Shown here: positions 15,202-22,628 of the stretch, one piece after another | Layout of the letters: each line of letters opens with the position of its first letter | Position numbering within the stretch: position 1 is the first letter of the stretch | DNA from: Thalia democratica | Lineage: Eukaryota | NCBI GenBank assembly: GCA_965202585.1 | Contig: OZ241831.1 | Coordinates: forward strand, 28,582,001 to 28,646,000 | Length of the DNA: 64,000 nt | Direction: 5' to 3' | Made by a program: the position numbers and the translations under genes | The notes under the pieces: generated by a model | Databases searched by the model: none | What the model was told of the DNA's origin: nothing | The model's input: the letters and a program-made list of their open reading frames with translations, nothing else

Positions 15202-18200
15202 ATAAACTCGTCTGAAGAAAGCATCATTGAGTTGCTTCGTGACATGAATTGTTGCCAAGGAGAAAATAAATCATTTACAATTCTTAATCAATCCCAACGC
15301 GATGCCAGCAATCTAAAGGCTACAATAACTACTAAAACTCAGGTTATTTAAGATTGTATATACTTTTGCATTTGATAGTTAGGTCTTAAAGTTTTACAAT
15401 TTATATTTAACAAGAAATACACCAAACTGGTAACTCTTAATTTATTCTATTTAACATTTTTCTTTCTTTTATACAAATTTTTCTTGACATTAAACTAATA
15501 AACGTTACATCAATTTAAACGAAACACAGCAGAAAGAATAGTATCATTAATAACTTTTTTTTTTAAATCATTCACTATGTTTATTATTTTAAGGCCTTAC
15601 AAAATAATAAATAACTACAAATTTATTTTATTTAAGTGTGTTGAAAAAAAAATTGCACACATATTTATGAAGAACCCTTATTTGGTCTTCTCATTATTTT
15701 TTGTTGTTTTGTGAATATTTCAAAGTATAAAAATATCTACAATTTTTTTAATTGGTAGTGTAGTTCTCCTTAAGATTTATTTCTCTCTCTCTTTTTTCTT
15801 GTTTTATTCCGTCTATGATCCAGTGTGCAGTTCTTGAAAAATTACCATAAAAATAAGTTGTTTGTTTATATCAAGCTGTGAACTTACCAAAATAGTTTTT
15901 TGTTTGTTATCAGACAACTTTATATATCATTGCATTACATTCACTTTCCTACAACGCTTATCATTTTTCCTACGCTTATTCATTTATCTATAGATTTCGT
16001 ATATAAAGATTTTTGTCTTTAATAAATCTATAGATGGTTGTTTGTTTCACTAGTTTTTGTTTATACTTTACTGATTTTGTTTCATATGTTTCTTTATACA
16101 TTTATTATAATATTGTAAACACATGTTTATAAACTTAACAACGAATTAATAATTACTTAAATAGTTTGGATAAGTAGTTTTGTTATAAAAAATTATAATT
16201 GTGTCAAAATTATTTTAACAATTTATTTATTTATGTAGGCTTAATATAAGTCTAAATTTAATGAAACTCAAGAAACAAAAATAAGCATTATTTAGCCACT
16301 TTTAGTTAGCTTCAAGTGTTTAATTTGTGTTCAACTAATAAATTGTTACGGTGTACAATAAAATAAAATTTATTTCAGATATCTGGAAACAAAAAACATA
16401 ACAAACTCCAAAACAACAAAAAGATGAAAAATGAAAGTTGTAAGTTGTCTAAAAAAGGTAATATAAATGGCGATAAAAAGTCCAAAACTAAGTCAGTTTT
16501 AATTATTTTTCGAATAAAAAATGTTATATACTAACAAAGTTTTGTATTTAGAAAAGGAAGCCCGAGTCAAAAAGCTGAACAAGTTAACTTAACAAGTAAA
16601 TTATTTTAAGCTTTATTAATAACAAGCTTTCAAATACTATATAAATCTTTATTTTTAGCTAGTGTACTACAACATCAAAATTCCTTACTGAGAAATGACC
16701 TGAAAGTTTTAAAAAATAAACTCGAAAACACATTACAAGTAAACAAAGTTTTAAATCAGCAAAATGGAAACTTAAATGTGAGTTAGAGTTTTATAATTAA
16801 TAAGTGTTTTACTATTTACTTATATTAGGCTTGTATAAGTATTTTTAAGTATTTTATTGATTGGTACAAAGTAAGGAACGACAATTTTTTTGTTTTACTT
16901 TAATAAAGATTCTTTTGCTGTAATTCAATAACATATATGATTATTTTGTCCAAACATTTATTATACTTTTTTTATAAGTTTAGGAAATACCGAATTTAAA
17001 AAATAGTTTTAATATACAGGCAGACTTAGTCAAAATTAAAATAGAGTTAGAAAATGAAAAAGTAAACATCAGTGCAAAAGAAAATCATTTTCAAAATGAA
17101 ACTTTAGTAATCAAAAGAGGTATATATATATTTTTTAAATTAAACTATAGCTATAATGTGGAAATTTGTTATCATATATTCCAGTGAACTTGCTTCGCTA
17201 GGACCTCTATTGACAAACGATTAACTTTAAATTTTGAATGTTTATCTTTTATATGAGTATAAATTACTAATTGGTTGTCTTTAATGAATTAAAGTGATAA
17301 AGTATTTGTACTAGTATATATTTGTCAAGCTATATGAACTTTTTTTTTCAATTCGAACAAATTAAAACCAGTATACTATTATATAAGATATAAGTTCATA
17401 TTTTTTGTCTAACTATTGAAAAATATTAATTTAAGCGTTTTTAACAAAGGTCCGTTCACTGGAATATACAATACTAATAACAGATTATACAGTATTTATT
17501 CTTTATTACACTAACACATGTTTACTAACTCGTTAACACACAGAACCATGTGTTGGTGTAATAAATAATACTATTTAACTTGTTATAATTATTTTCTTTT
17601 TTGTAATTTTGTTTTGAATTAATATTTTTAAAGAAATTTGAAAGGTATAAAAAGTGTTTACTTTGCTGAAAAAACGTTCAAATGATTTATAGGATTAAAT
17701 TCTAGTATTGTTCAGTTTTTAGATAATTAGTTTCTAGTTTAACAATAACAATAGACTTAATCAATATTTATAAACAAAACTAAATTTTTGGCCAATTTTT
17801 GCGAATCTTCTATTAAGAAATTCTAATACATTATATTAAATATATTATATCAATAAACAAAAACTCTTACTAGAAGTTTCAGTGGTCACAAATAAAATAT
17901 GGAATTAAAACACTTTATAAATAAAAACAGCTTGTTTATCTGGTTATATAGCTTCTTGTTTTATTCTCTTTATATTTCAAACCAGTCTACTTAAAAAAAA
18001 AAATATTTTCTACTTTTTATTTTTATTTTAGCTTAAGATTTCTTAAACCAATTTGGAAGGTATAAAAAACACTGCTTTTGTTCAAAATTGTTTTTCAAGC
18101 TGTACAAGTGTACATGTACTCAAAAATGATTATTTTCTAAAACTATACATTTAACTAAACAAATTAAAGTAAAAAATAAGTAGGTATTTGATATATATTT

Positions 18201-21200
18201 ATATTTTAACTATAAAGTTATTTTTATTTTTTTTCAAATTCTTACATTTATTGTACTTACGAATTCTTTTGAATTTTTGTAAACAAAGACTACTACTTAA
18301 ATTTTCAATAGTTAAGTTCAACATTAATTCAAAAATTAACTATTATAGACAACAACTGTTTTATTTAGTTACAACTAAAATATATTTAACAAAATGATTA
18401 ATTCAATCTCTTTACAAACATCCATGCAAACTTTTAAATTTTTCACAATTCACTTGGTTTCCATTCCCATCATGAAGATCGCCTTCCTAGCAGCCGATTC
18501 CCTCGCCTCGTGCGCCGACTTCCTTCCCCTGCCGTCGCCCGCGATCACAAACTCGCTACTTCCCTTACCCAGGCACCTGCTCACCACTACGCAGTCGTGC
18601 AGCTCCTGGTGGCACATTATCTTGTCCGTGTGGAAGGCGTGCGGCCACTTGGCCATTTCGGAGAAGCTTTCCAATCGCTTCTTTGCAGGAACTTTGTCGT
18701 CTTCTTCTTGACCGCACAAATTTCTCAGCATCGATTTCGCCGCTGACTCCTCAGCGCACTGTCTGCTGCGCATCGGCACCAGCGACACCGACTCCGCCAT
18801 GTCGAAGTCCACTTCTCCCAACCTCGCCAAGTTCTCCTTCGCTTGCGCTTCGTCCTCTGCAGGAAGCGGCGACAAGTCGACGACGGAATCCGGAAGGAGA
18901 ATGTCTACGTCATCGTTGCTCTCCAGCGTCAGCTTGCTGCGCACGAATGACGTCACAGTGGTTGTGTAAGGAGAACTCCTCCCGTAGATCGGGATGGTGC
19001 CGCCGTTCGCCACACAGTGTTCCTTCAGCGCGCGCTTGTAGTCGCGCCTGCGCATCTTGTGGAAGTTCTTATGGTCCTGCAAGCACGCTTGCGCCGCCTC
19101 CACTTCCGCCTCCCTCCGTTCCTTCTTGCTAGACACTTTTGCGTCGACAAAAACGTCTTTTTTCGTGGCGCACGGCGTGAACAACTGCAGCGTGCTGACG
19201 TACACGTGCTTCTGGGAGAAGGGTGCGACGTGGTAGACCGGGGGAAGCCCCGTTTTGGCGCGGCACAGCAGGTCGAGGCTCTTGCACGGGTCGATTTCAT
19301 CGATCAGCGCTCCCTGCTGCTTGAGCGCCTGCACCGCCGCCGCCTCGATCGCGTCCTCCTCCGTCATCTTCGGCTGCCGGTTCATCGCCGCGAACCTGGC
19401 CGTGAACTTGACCTGGCAGTAGAACTTTCCTTTCTTGTGCTCGACGTCGAAGCTCGCGTCGTAATCCGGGTTCTGCGCTTTCAAAGCCTGCCTCAGCTTG
19501 TCCTGGAAGTATCCTTTTCCCCCGCCGCCGCTGCTCGAAGAACCTTCCTTTTTCCCGCCGTTACCATTTCTGCTTCTTGATCCCGTGCTTTTGTTTCCAC
19601 CGCCGTTGCCAGTTTTGCTGGAACAGGAAAACGACGCGCTGTCCGTGCTTTTTTGCCGTTTTATCAATTTGAAAAGAGACTCCTGGGATGACTTCAAACG
19701 TTGTTTTAAGCATTGTTTCAAATTCTGCGAGTTTTTATGAACTTGGGTAAGCGCACAAAGTTTTAGATTTTCGCTTTTCATGTTACTTGTTTGTGTAGTT
19801 TTCACCGGCGCGGATTTTGTGCGACGAACAGACAATTTTTCTGGCCTACCATAGTTGTTTTCCTTACAAAACGGCATTTCTTTTTTATCAATTTTCGACA
19901 GAACACCGTTCGCGTCGCCCAAAAGTATGTTGAGGTTGGCGCATTTGACGTGCCGCAGCTTGTCTTCGGTCGAGCTTAAAGAACCGAGCTCGCACAGCTT
20001 GTCGTCCCTCAGCAGCTGGAACATGTGCTCGAAGTTCTCGTCCAAGCGGTCCCGGTTGCACATGTAACCCGGGCAGTGCATCATCTCGTTACGGACGTCG
20101 GCCAGCTTTCTGACGGTTTGAATGTCCTCGATGAAGTCGTCGCACGTCCTGTTGCTTTTTATGTAGAGCAAAAGCGCGGCCGCGTCGAACGACTTCCAGC
20201 TGCTGCCCCTGGGAAGCATGTTGCCCCCGGTCATGTACACCCGCGCCATGTCCCATGGGCCCTGGTCGGGACAGTGCCACTTGGTCGGGTCGGAGAACTT
20301 GAGCGCGTGGCCGGCCAGCCACTTGACAGAGGCGTTCTGGTTCCGGTGCTGCTTGCGCATCTCGCGCGCCCATTGCCAGTAAAAGTGCTTTTCCCGCTGC
20401 TTGGCGCTCATGCCTCGCAGCTTGTGCACTTCTTCTTTCGTGAACCTCTTGTTGTTTTGTGACTCTCGGACGCGGTCGAACTTGGCAAAGCTCTTTTCCA
20501 CGGCGCAAGTTATGTGCGGTGCGAGAAACTCCATGCACACTTTCAGGCCGAGGCAGATGCGCAGCCAGTTCTTGAACTCGTCTTTTCCCGCCAGTTCGTG
20601 CCATGTGTCTTCGTCCAAATTGGTCAGCGGCGCGTTGCTCACTTTGCTGACCAGCACTGACGACGAGGTGCTGCTGGAGATGAACGAAGAGTCGCGCCTG
20701 ACCGCGTTTTGGTCCATCGCGGGAGGTTGCTTGGAAATTATTGAGCTTGTGAACGTGCTGTACTTATAGAGCTGTCCATTGGCTAGGAAAAATGACTTGT
20801 TTCTACAGAAAAGCGTGAACTTTTGGCTTGAACTTATCTTAAATGACAAACAACATTTTGTGAACATGTTAACAAACGCAGACTTTAAACGAACCGATTA
20901 CTTTGAAACTATTCCATTTTAACACGAGAAAACCAGGTAGAATTTACATAAACAGACAAAATTTTAGTAGTAGTAATTTACATACTCAAACTTGAAAAAA
21001 CTTAATCTTTTTTGACAGATTTTATTTAACCGTTTAATTGTGATGTCATCTTAAAAATTTAATGTAAAAATAGTATAAAATGATTCTATCCAAGATTTTA
21101 TTCACAAATAACGATCTTTAGAAAACCTGAATATAACATTGATATGTATTTATAATCTTTTTAAATAAAATTTTGGAAATTTGTCTTATTATATAAAATT

Positions 21201-22628
21201 AAGTTGAGAACTTTTTATAATTCATTTTGAAAATAAATTACATTAGTAAAAGTGATTATAATTAAACTTCTGTTTTCTTATTATCTAAAGCGGTATATTT
21301 TTTTAGTTTTTTTATTGGACTCTTTATACATGTTTTATGTAAACTATAATATTAATTTAGATTTTTTTTTGGAACATAAAAAAGTAGTCAGCTAAATATT
21401 AATTACAAAAACTATTAAGTTGAGCTTTTTATCAATATTATGCAGTTTTGTGCATTTATTTTTGTTATTAAAATTTAATAACTCACTCAAAAAATTTTTT
21501 ATCTCACATAAATTGTTTTTATATTATATTACTTATGTTGTTTTAAATCTTCTCTGTAATATAAAAAAATGTTTTTATCTCTTATGGGAAGTTTGAAAAG
21601 TTTTTTTTGTAAAGCATCAAAATTAATAACTTATATTAGTTATAAAACTACTTATTTATTTGATGAGTATAAAAAAAAATATTATGTTTTAATTTATCTT
21701 TCAGAGGTCGATACCGCGTTAGAAAAAATAAAAAACTTAAAAAAGAATTTAAGTAGTTGTGATAAAGAAAGAGAAAAGTTGTATAAACAAAATCTGCAAA
21801 AAGACGAAGAAGTTAACAGACTAAACCACTTAAATAAGTTTGTTTTAGTTTTAGTGTTACTTAACTGACTTTTTTATATAACATTCTGTGGATTTTAAAA
21901 AAGTTGAAATACTTTATAAAGAATTATGATAAGTATGAAACATGTACTAAAAAATATTTAAACTGTTTTTGTGAAAAATAACTTTAATAATTGAGTTGTA
22001 CCAGTGACTCTCAAATCTTAAAAAACTATCCAGTTTTAAAGTATTCTGTGCATTTCAAAATGTTTATGTGTAGTTTTTATTGTACTAATATTAAATAAAC
22101 CAAAAGTTTTTTAAAACCCAGCTGTTTGTTAGAAACTAAACAGGTATATATTTAAATCAATAAAAGTGCAGTTTATGTATATAAAAAAAATGCTGTGCTC
22201 ATAATTATATTTATTAGCTTAAAGTGAATAAAGCTTGGTTTTCACATACGCTCTTATAAAAACCTTTTTTTTTCATCAGGCAACTTCAAAGTAGCGTGGA
22301 AAGGCTTCTCGCCGATCTGCAGGAAAACCACCGCCACAAAAAGGACATGCAAGAAAAAGTCATGCTCAAACTGCACCGACCAATCAAATCGCTCCCTGAA
22401 CCTCCCAACATCGCGCATTGGTTGAGCGACGGTGGCAACATGCGCGTTTTGTACCAAGATCGAGACGAAAGCTGTTCGGGCAACTGTCAAGTTTCTCAGT
22501 CTTCAGATAATTCGACCTCGTCTTCTTGTCTGAGAGACGAGGAGCGAAATTTCAGCGACGAACTGACGATGCTCGATGAAGACATCGCTGAAATGCAGAA
22601 CAAACTCAGAAGTTTTGTCAGCCTGTAA
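15202..22628 (+). CDS. Multi-exon coiled-coil protein of unknown function. Exons 15202-15342, 16379-16491, 16552-16595, 16659-16777, 17020-17119, 21705-21837, 22280-22628; 5' end unresolved (in-frame ATG at 15244)
   Basis: All seven exons have AG/GT boundaries with mutually compatible phases and sum to 999 nt (333 codons including the stop), with no internal stop. The product has heptad-like segments (LLRNDLKVLKNKLENTLQ..., EVDTALEKIKNLKKNL..., ELTMLDEDIAEMQNKL). No family recognised. Confidence 0.8.
17177..17466. mobile_element. Small TA-flanked MITE (Tc1/mariner-like)
   Basis: ta|tattccagtgaac ... gttcactggaata|ta inverted termini. Confidence 0.5.
18450..20867 (-). CDS. Intronless 805-aa protein: CXorf38/DUF4559-like HEPN domain (aa ~88-310), Gly/Ser linker, four dsRBD-like repeats (aa ~452-520, 526-598, 609-718, 727-801)
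   Basis: Long open frame in a GC-rich island. N-terminal motifs match my recollection of CXorf38 in order: EFKNWLRICLGL (EYKNWVKAGHCL), WAREMRKQHRNQNASVKW (WKREILRHHVNRNGDVHW), PWDMARVYM (AWEVAKAFM), FDAAALLLYI (CDAVALLSLI), VRNEMMH (CRNEIMH). The C-terminal repeats begin with a helix such as DYKRALKEHC or PAKKRLESFS and end with K/R-x-x-A-[EQ]-x-x-AA-x-x-[AML] helices (KSAHEARESAARKAI, RSRQCAEESAAKSML, KERREAEVEAAQACL), typical of dsRBD helix 2. A second Met at aa 51 (20717) is an alternative start. Confidence 0.85.
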   Translation of the reverse strand: MFTKCCLSFKISSSQKFTLFCRNKSFFLANGQLYKYSTFTSSIISKQPPAMDQNAVRRDSSFISSSTSSSVLVSKVSNAPLTNLDEDTWHELAGKDEFKNWLRICLGLKVCMEFLAPHITCAVEKSFAKFDRVRESQNNKRFTKEEVHKLRGMSAKQREKHFYWQWAREMRKQHRNQNASVKWLAGHALKFSDPTKWHCPDQGPWDMARVYMTGGNMLPRGSSWKSFDAAALLLYIKSNRTCDDFIEDIQTVRKLADVRNEMMHCPGYMCNRDRLDENFEHMFQLLRDDKLCELGSLSSTEDKLRHVKCANLNILLGDANGVLSKIDKKEMPFCKENNYGRPEKLSVRRTKSAPVKTTQTSNMKSENLKLCALTQVHKNSQNLKQCLKQRLKSSQESLFKLIKRQKSTDSASFSCSSKTGNGGGNKSTGSRSRNGNGGKKEGSSSSGGGGKGYFQDKLRQALKAQNPDYDASFDVEHKKGKFYCQVKFTARFAAMNRQPKMTEEDAIEAAAVQALKQQGALIDEIDPCKSLDLLCRAKTGLPPVYHVAPFSQKHVYVSTLQLFTPCATKKDVFVDAKVSSKKERREAEVEAAQACLQDHKNFHKMRRRDYKRALKEHCVANGGTIPIYGRSSPYTTTVTSFVRSKLTLESNDDVDILLPDSVVDLSPLPAEDEAQAKENLARLGEVDFDMAESVSLVPMRSRQCAEESAAKSMLRNLCGQEEDDKVPAKKRLESFSEMAKWPHAFHTDKIMCHQELHDCVVVSRCLGKGSSEFVIAGDGRGRKSAHEARESAARKAIFMMGMETK

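Follow-up and report, generated by a model that had tools for sequence, protein, structure and literature searches.

A gene on the minus strand of a 64,000-nucleotide stretch of the Thalia democratica genome (contig OZ241831.1, positions 28,582,001 to 28,646,000; hereafter the window, in whose own numbering all positions are given) encodes a CXorf38/DUF4559-type HEPN domain joined by a low-complexity linker to four C-terminal repeats that are predicted to adopt the fold of the double-stranded RNA-binding domain (dsRBD). All features described below lie on the minus strand unless stated otherwise. The coding sequence (18450..20867) runs for 805 codons plus a stop codon from an ATG start and forms an intact open reading frame (ORF) in a single exon. 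RNA contigs from marine metatranscriptomes and from oligo-dT libraries, which carry no strand information, are colinear with the genome over positions 18346-19051, 19241-19779, 19920-20109, and 20719-20953, and an AATAAA polyadenylation signal can be read at 18360..18365, with the contig end (18346) 14 nt downstream. The gene is therefore transcribed, intronless, and at least ~2.6 kb long, with a minimum transcript (5' untranslated region, coding sequence, and 3' untranslated region) of 18346..20953. No RNA contigs were found over the flanks at 17952-18319 and 20954-21700, and coverage stops in AT-rich intergenic DNA. Further, in one of the same RNA runs, a neighboring gene on the plus strand is seen spliced from 21837 to 22280 (GT..AG), and the run thus contains real RNA of the organism. 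Searches with the protein and with the DUF4559 profile both returned a single locus (contig C7) and no paralogs in the 802-Mb assembly. The reading that we favor, with modest confidence, is that this gene is the pelagic-tunicate ortholog of the ascidian CXorf38-family HEPN proteins with four divergent C-terminal dsRBD-fold domains, and that its product is a proposed dimeric ribonuclease (RNase).

The folded core of the HEPN domain spans residues 85-330 (19878..20615). A CXorf38-like domain had been proposed here in an initial annotation made from the letters of the DNA, and profile and structural comparisons bear this out. Specifically, Pfam DUF4559 (PF15112) matches at 79.3 bits, relative to a gathering cutoff of 27 (E 4.6e-22; envelope residues 96-396, nt 19680-20582), and it matches all 14 aligned relatives as well, the alignment comprising tunicates, bivalves, and metagenome or assembly proteins. 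An AlphaFold model of residues 85-335, based on this alignment, is all-helical with a predicted local distance difference test score (pLDDT) of 82. When searched with Foldseek against AlphaFold DB/Swiss-Prot, it matched only CXorf38 of mouse (Q8C5K5, E 2.7e-6, template modeling [TM] score 0.67) and human (Q8TB03, E 7.1e-6, TM 0.63), both with a probability of 1.0 and with models that are predicted on both sides, and the next match fell at E 0.68. The domain contains an intact R-x4-H motif, R259-N-E-M-M-H264 (residues 259-264; 20076..20093), which is predicted to be catalytic and lies exactly where the annotation had placed it (nt 20093-20076). Loss of this motif from orthologs would have told against the proposed sensor-effector; R259 and H264 are invariant across the 14 aligned sequences, and N260 and the upstream acidic residue D228 (20184..20186) are nearly so. 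In the model, R259 (model residue R175) falls in the last turn of the helix at model residues 165-179, and H264 (model residue H180) is the first residue of the next loop. The study that introduced CXorf38 as a HEPN family in its own right, with predicted activity (Anantharaman, Makarova, Burroughs, Koonin, and Aravind 2013, Biol Direct 8:15, PMC3710099), gives the same position for the HEPN motif, at the end of helix 3. That study lists a Zn-ribbon (Cys-rich) insert for the family. We find it in the bivalve members, and neither the window protein nor any tunicate ortholog has it; the insert is a variable feature that is not required for CXorf38 family membership.

Several observations weigh against assigning this domain to the HEPN RNases. 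In an all-against-all structural search of the PDB with VIA, solved HEPN structures were not prominent for the N-terminal model (AbiF, 8vz6, at Z 5.5, and 2hsb at Z 5.4, within helical-bundle noise), and Foldseek returned no PDB match at E <= 0.001. Because the comparison with solved structures is uninformative, HEPN membership rests on the motif, on the published classification, and on weak Pfam matches among the 14 family members, with HEPN_Swt1 found in three of them (best E 0.039) and HEPN in one. PF13643 (DUF4145), which we take to be a HEPN family, was also weakly matched among family members. A phmmer search of the whole protein against PDB sequences gave low-complexity noise alone. Further, in the literature that we searched, RNase activity is demonstrated for no member of the CXorf38 family, with predictions alone being found, and these searches returned no experimental work on CXorf38.

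The HEPN domain is nevertheless predicted to form a symmetric homodimer with the composite-site geometry expected of a HEPN RNase. For residues 85-335 modeled in two copies and without RNA, the interface score (ipSAE) was 0.59 in all three runs, versus 0.01 for the best control. This passes a mark that, in calibration, picked out 21 of the 30 proteins solved as same-chain pairs and none of the 23 solved as single chains; among eukaryotes, 17 of 29 reached it. At least 69% of the contacts were common to all three runs, and the partner pLDDT was at least 82. The confident interface is made up of residues 102-112, 225-230 (KSFDAA, with D228), 263-268 (MHCPGY, with H264), and 306-318, the second and third of these segments being contributed by both copies, and the predicted dimer brings H264 into contact with D228 of the partner chain. 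In this geometry, D228 probably completes the active site. The expectation that two RxxxxH motifs would meet across a dimer agrees with this prediction, and the H264-D228 pairing echoes the His-Asp dyad that a 2026 preprint suggests for dimers of truncated human CXorf38 (bioRxiv 10.64898/2026.05.28.728550); judged by spacing, D228 may be the counterpart of the D134 proposed there for the human protein. Two reservations count against the dimer, namely, that the complex predictor may owe its score to solved HEPN dimers that it has memorized and that it is silent on affinity. Since the HEPN domain alone is predicted to dimerize without RNA, dimerization need not be the regulated step.

The linker (residues 331-452; 19512..19877) is of low complexity, ends in a Gly/Ser/Asn tract (residues 414-451), and leads into the four repeats, an arrangement that the initial annotation had described as a Gly/Ser linker followed by four dsRBD-type repeats and that the models uphold. 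Repeat 1 (R1, residues 453-519; 19311..19511) has helices at model residues 9-21 and 59-74 that enclose strands at 27-34, 37-47, and 49-51 (pLDDT 84-91). In repeat 2 (R2, residues 527-598; 19074..19289), helices at 83-95 and 137-153 flank strands at 100-105 and 110-119 and a loop. Repeat 3 (R3, residues 607-718; 18714..19049) has helices at 163-176 and 258-274 and strands at 183-185, 192-195, and 246-250, with low pLDDT over 185-244, and it carries a disordered acidic insert of ~50 residues between beta2 and beta3. Repeat 4 (R4, residues 728-800; 18468..18686), the most basic of the four, shows helices at 284-295 and 341-355 and strands at 299-307, 313-318, and 326-332 (pLDDT 81-91). Overall, the AlphaFold model of residues 445-805, built from a seven-sequence alignment, has a mean pLDDT of 67 and reads alpha-beta-beta-beta-alpha four times over by DSSP.

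Structural comparison of this model, made with the four repeats as a whole rather than repeat by repeat, places dsRBDs in all of the top 50 rows of a VIA all-against-all search of 48,161 PDB chains (Z 11.3 to 6.9). The best match is HYL1 (3adg; Z 11.3, root-mean-square deviation of 1.8 A over 68 of 72 residues), and the dsRBDs of the top 50 include those of HYL1, DHX29, DRB4, Staufen, Dus2, R2D2, TARBP2, Loqs, RNase III, Xlrbpa, PKR, ADAR, and DGCR8. Foldseek, by comparison, found nothing in the PDB at E <= 0.001 (TARBP2 and Loqs on top at E ~0.03, with MLE near the top), because the multidomain geometry defeats a global alignment. In sequence, the repeats are very divergent. Counting against the dsRBD assignment, the C-terminal region of the window protein itself falls below the Pfam dsrm (PF00035) cutoff, at 19.3 bits versus 23 (E 0.0017), and Pfam searches with single repeats gave no dsrm match, the sole weak match to a dsRBD-like family being Dicer_dimer for R1. 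The corresponding region of Ciona passes the dsrm cutoff (34.7 bits, E about 2.9e-8), with the alpha1-beta1 part of R3 matching dsrm positions 1-28, and dsrm is the sole Pfam family matched by all seven orthologous C-terminal regions (E <= 1). Profiles of individual repeats against PDB sequences gave weak matches throughout, specifically, E 0.046 (DRB2 dsRBD1) and E 0.13 (RNase III) for R1, E 1.2 for R2, and E 0.84 for R3, and nothing relevant for R4, where the top match (uL10) is spurious. Alignments between the repeats by hhalign are faint and in register (R1-R4 at a probability of 66%, R1-R3 at 60%, R2-R3 at 44%), and in a protein-language-model atlas, the neighbors lean toward dsrm families at scores that are all below 0.9 and serve as a lead only. 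Given the structural matches, the Ciona region above the dsrm cutoff, the sharing of dsrm by all seven regions, and the DRBM naming in UniProt, we consider the assignment of a dsRBD fold to the four modeled repeats to be sound.

Whether the repeats touch RNA is a separate matter. Canonical RNA-binding dsRBDs carry a GPxH loop and a KKxAK motif at the N terminus of alpha2. To the detriment of a role in RNA binding, KKxAK is kept in none of the four repeats of the window protein, and few of the repeats in the ascidian orthologs are basic, most having an acidic or neutral isoelectric point (pI; mostly 4.1-7.1), such that double-stranded RNA (dsRNA) binding is uncertain. The N terminus of alpha2 reads TEEDA in R1, KKERR in R2 (in this species only), SRQCA in R3, and SAHEAR with an upstream RGRK in R4. 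The latter repeat reads GRGRKSAHEARESAA, of which the A-[KR]-E-S-A-A part is kept in the orthologs. In the window protein, pI values are 8.1 (R1), 8.4 (R2), 5.2 (R3), and 9.3 (R4). R4 and, in this species, R2 would be the repeats most likely to contact RNA, with R4 the best candidate, and R1 and R3 look more like noncanonical protein-contact dsRBDs.

These features bear on how the nuclease would be controlled. The initial annotation had supposed that long dsRNA dimerizes and activates the enzyme; stated fully, the protein would be an autonomous sensor-effector of antiviral or anti-transposon defense that stays an inactive monomer as long as no long dsRNA aligns two or more copies through their dsRBDs, upon which the HEPN domains dimerize and cleave, in the manner of PKR or RNase L. 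The domain layout, with an effector joined through a long flexible linker to several dsRBD folds, would suit such a switch, as would the dsRNA targets, such as viral replication intermediates, that have been proposed for dsRBD-bearing CXorf38 proteins (PMC3710099). An exon-by-exon scan of the genome found one KEN-domain locus, and neither OAS1_C nor the RIG-I C-terminal domain turned up, which leans the same way as a weak negative, given that such a scan does not show absence. Other observations tell against the switch. The HEPN domain alone is predicted, with high confidence, to pair in the absence of RNA; the canonical dsRNA-contact motifs are degenerate, and the ascidian repeats are acidic; and the gene is single copy, with 1:1 tunicate orthologs under strong purifying selection and with no expansion like that of the bivalve DUF4559-NACHT genes. 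We found no support for activation through dsRNA-induced dimerization, and we regard such a switch as distinctly unlikely.

The same degeneracy is what would be expected were the dsRBD folds protein-protein or self-association modules that dock the HEPN nuclease in a complex, making the protein a housekeeping factor of RNA surveillance or processing in the manner of Swt1 or Las1, with repeats like Staufen dsRBD5 and TRBP/Loqs dsRBD3. The loss of KKxAK from all repeats and the low pI of the ascidian repeats favor this, as does the high structural rank of Staufen dsRBD5 (5cff), TARBP2 291-363 (7zpj_D), Loqs dsRBD3 (4x8w), and the DRB7.2:DRB4 interaction domains (8igd), all of which we take to be non-RNA-binding. 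Both kinds of dsRBD rank high among the PDB matches, however, and RNA-binding examples (HYL1 dsRBD1, Xlrbpa [1di2], and RNase III) do so equally; R4 is basic, as is R2 in this species, and there is no known partner. A conserved, single-copy gene under purifying selection is in keeping with a housekeeping role, and CXorf38 has been placed in the Swt1-like group (PMC3710099).

The basic N-terminal leader (residues 1-50; 20718..20867), which is Ser/Thr-rich and free of Asp and Glu, raises the possibility that such a factor acts in the nucleus or an organelle. In the alignment, its start, M-[YF]-x-K...C-[RK], is kept in all tunicate orthologs, and this conservation of a basic leader again fits a housekeeping role. 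The leader may be an organellar or nuclear targeting signal. The case for a targeting peptide comes from composition, however, and the hydrophobic moment of the leader is low in the window protein (0.20) and high in ascidians (0.45-0.85). Weighing these points together, we see the housekeeping alternative as possible, if on the unlikely side.

The evidence from orthologs bears on the favored reading, that of a CXorf38-family HEPN protein shared by tunicates. When 1.84 billion representative proteins were searched exhaustively with phmmer, 16 matches were obtained in total; phmmer was needed, as a word-index homolog search had found one ortholog alone, with low-complexity words crowding its candidate list. 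The matches that span both halves of the protein are all tunicate: Clavelina lepadiformis (XP_076805481-3, CAK8690992-4), Styela clava (XP_039251565), Ciona intestinalis (XP_018668010), and two fragments from Ciona savignyi. The ascidian orthologs share 26-32% identity with the window protein (E 1e-26 to 2e-34) and are colinear over the full length, from leader and HEPN domain through linker and four repeats, with linkers that are much longer, by 100-250 residues. Weaker matches cover the N-terminal domain alone, and the named ones among them are bivalve, some fused to NACHT. A search of invertebrates for the same architecture, as suggested in the initial annotation, thus leads to tunicates, to which all full-length relatives belong, and stops short at bivalves, where the N-terminal domain alone is matched. 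A cnidarian origin of the DNA was considered and rejected on the ground that every full-length relative is a tunicate protein. The bivalves Mercenaria and Mya have several DUF4559 genes with the Cys-rich insert in the HEPN domain, several of which are fused to NACHT, and several of the copies of Mya arenaria share a single 52.9-Mb contig. The bivalve DUF4559 set fits an earlier description of immune-type HEPN proteins that have expanded in particular lineages (PMC3710099).

Closer relatives come from assemblies of environmental samples, namely, one with 25 substitutions and one, on a 2.8-kb marine contig, that is 70-73% identical and that we treat as the ortholog of a sister species. Relative to the latter, the proportion of nonsynonymous differences (pN) is 0.107 in the HEPN domain, 0.147-0.186 in the repeats, 0.20 in the linker, and 0.27 in the R3 insert, and the corresponding synonymous proportion (pS) exceeds 0.59 or is saturated; amino acid identity is lowest in the linker (0.62). 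All of the domains are under purifying selection.

Gene structure sets the pelagic lineage apart. The Styela ortholog has ~18 coding exons over 12.6 kb, versus uninterrupted coding sequences in the window gene and in the sister-species ortholog, which points to a lineage that lost every intron or in which a processed copy replaced the gene. Base composition differs even between the two intronless orthologs, with a GC content of 0.55 and a GC content at third codon positions (GC3) of 0.73 in the window gene versus 0.39 and 0.41 in the sister species, and with flanks of ~20% GC around both genes. Within the window, the ORF, at ~55% GC and up to 66% in 200-nt windows, is the largest and strongest GC island of the 64 kb, and GC3 reaches ~0.85 in the folded domains and 0.4-0.56 in the linkers. 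Biased gene conversion and selection on an intronless mRNA are both possibilities for the shift in composition between the orthologs. We considered horizontal transfer or contamination as the source of the GC island and rejected it, in that the sister-species ortholog sits in equally AT-rich flanks and the organism's own DNA runs hold 95-100% of the words of the locus. The DNA of the locus is also present in several marine and seawater metagenomes.

Annotated isoforms of the ascidian genes bring in a further alternative. In Clavelina, each of two annotation pipelines gives isoforms with and without a 30-residue segment that holds the motif (RNRTMH), and Ciona isoform X3 also lacks the catalytic motif. 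Alternative splicing in ascidians may therefore yield nuclease-dead forms that still carry the dsRBDs, which the intronless window gene cannot do. If a version free of the nuclease motif has its uses, the window protein might conceivably be a catalytically inert RNA-binding or scaffold protein in which RxxxxH is kept for binding rather than cleavage, as several HEPN families are noncatalytic binders (PMC3710099). Against this, tunicates and bivalves have all four of the R, the N, the H, and the upstream D in common, and the CXorf38 family has been classed as active (PMC3710099). We find this inert-protein explanation hardly credible.

A neighboring gene on the plus strand lies head to head with the HEPN-dsRBD gene, less than ~800 nt from the 5' end of its transcript. 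Its exons lie at 21719-21837 and 22280-22361, with more exon-like sequence to ~22811, and a metatranscriptome contig confirms the GT..AG intron between the first two (21838-22279). In translation, the exons are coiled-coil-like. The two genes may share a promoter region.

Returning to the favored reading of the protein as a dimeric HEPN RNase, its mechanism can be hypothesized from the predicted interface and the domain layout. The HEPN domains would form a homodimer in which the H264 loop of one chain, set against the D228 segment of the other, makes a composite active site. The dimer would then act as a metal-independent endoribonuclease, to which the dsRBD array, on its flexible Gly/Ser linker, would deliver either a protein partner or RNA that is structured or double-stranded. 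Such an enzyme could serve in defense against RNA viruses or transposons or in RNA surveillance and processing. A more daring extension takes the first of these roles further: in tunicates, which are without the vertebrate interferon system, the protein would be a stand-alone, cytosolic, dsRNA-guided HEPN nuclease against RNA viruses and retrotransposons, whose array clamps or measures long dsRNA and feeds it to a preformed dimer, and for which the ascidian isoforms that lack the catalytic exon would be dominant-negative regulators, a control lost in the intronless pelagic lineage. We offer this extension as a long shot.

The interest of the gene lies largely in its family. CXorf38 is a conserved animal gene whose human ortholog has no experimentally known function, and the best hint of an action of the family on structured or double-stranded RNA comes from its dsRBD-fused forms. 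This idea can be tested tractably through the tunicate orthologs, the compact intronless one described here among them, as Ciona allows electroporation and CRISPR. If dsRBD-directed RNase activity were true of these proteins, they would add a fourth type to the HEPN nucleases of animals, next to RNase L/Ire1, Las1, and Swt1, and human CXorf38 would be assigned a function. As a sequence finding, the architecture is not new, having been published in 2013 and being annotated automatically in public databases.

Comparison with known systems begins with that prior description. The initial annotation took the gene to represent an undescribed pathway, and this does not stand. Specifically, the 2013 study had already reported the fusion of CXorf38 HEPN domains to dsRBDs in vertebrates, cephalochordates, and hemichordates, had listed DSRBD among the fusion domains of a family that ranges over vertebrates, Saccoglossus, Branchiostoma, Ciona, and Nematostella, and had proposed the dsRNA and viral targets mentioned above (PMC3710099), and UniProt names the Clavelina orthologs DRBM domain-containing proteins. 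The window protein resembles those CXorf38-dsRBD proteins in its HEPN family (DUF4559), in its RN..xH motif, predicted to be active, and in its C-terminal dsRBD fusion (PMC3710099), and differs from them in coming from a thaliacean-like pelagic tunicate, in its four very divergent repeats, and in lacking both the Zn-ribbon insert and introns. It is a new tunicate member of an architecture already described by computation, the biochemistry of which is predicted only. Unlike the window gene, the ascidian orthologs are many-exon genes with longer linkers and more acidic repeats, and in Clavelina and Ciona they have isoforms without the catalytic segment. With human and mouse CXorf38, the window protein shares the predicted HEPN fold (TM 0.63-0.67) and an RNE[IM]MH motif; those proteins, however, are 319 and 320 residues long (Q8TB03 and Q8C5K5), have no dsRBD array, and are 18-19% identical to it. 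The earlier statement that vertebrate CXorf38 is free of dsRBDs accordingly applies to human and mouse and not to vertebrates in general (PMC3710099).

More distant parallels are found among proteins of other families. The idea that OAS/RNase L or PKR logic has been collapsed into one chain survives as a working analogy alone, built on the dimer-spanning nuclease site of RNase L and Ire1 (KEN-type HEPN) and on the tandem dsRBD folds with which PKR and ADAR read dsRNA. Unlike RNase L, Ire1, PKR, and ADAR, the window protein has no kinase or pseudokinase, ankyrin/2-5A sensor, or deaminase, and ligand-induced dimerization is unsupported, the dimer being predicted without a ligand; a Pfam scan of the protein found no kinase, pseudokinase-KEN, or OAS nucleotidyltransferase domain. 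Elsewhere in the genome, the sole KEN-domain (Ribonuc_2-5A) exon lies at C8:45456654-45456827 (46.8 bits) and probably belongs to Ire1. Finally, the cyanobacterial HEPN-RNase III-dsRBD "two-headed" RNases likewise unite a HEPN domain with a dsRBD in a single chain (PMC3710099), and they differ in being bacterial, in belonging to another HEPN family, and in combining an RNase III domain with a single dsRBD.

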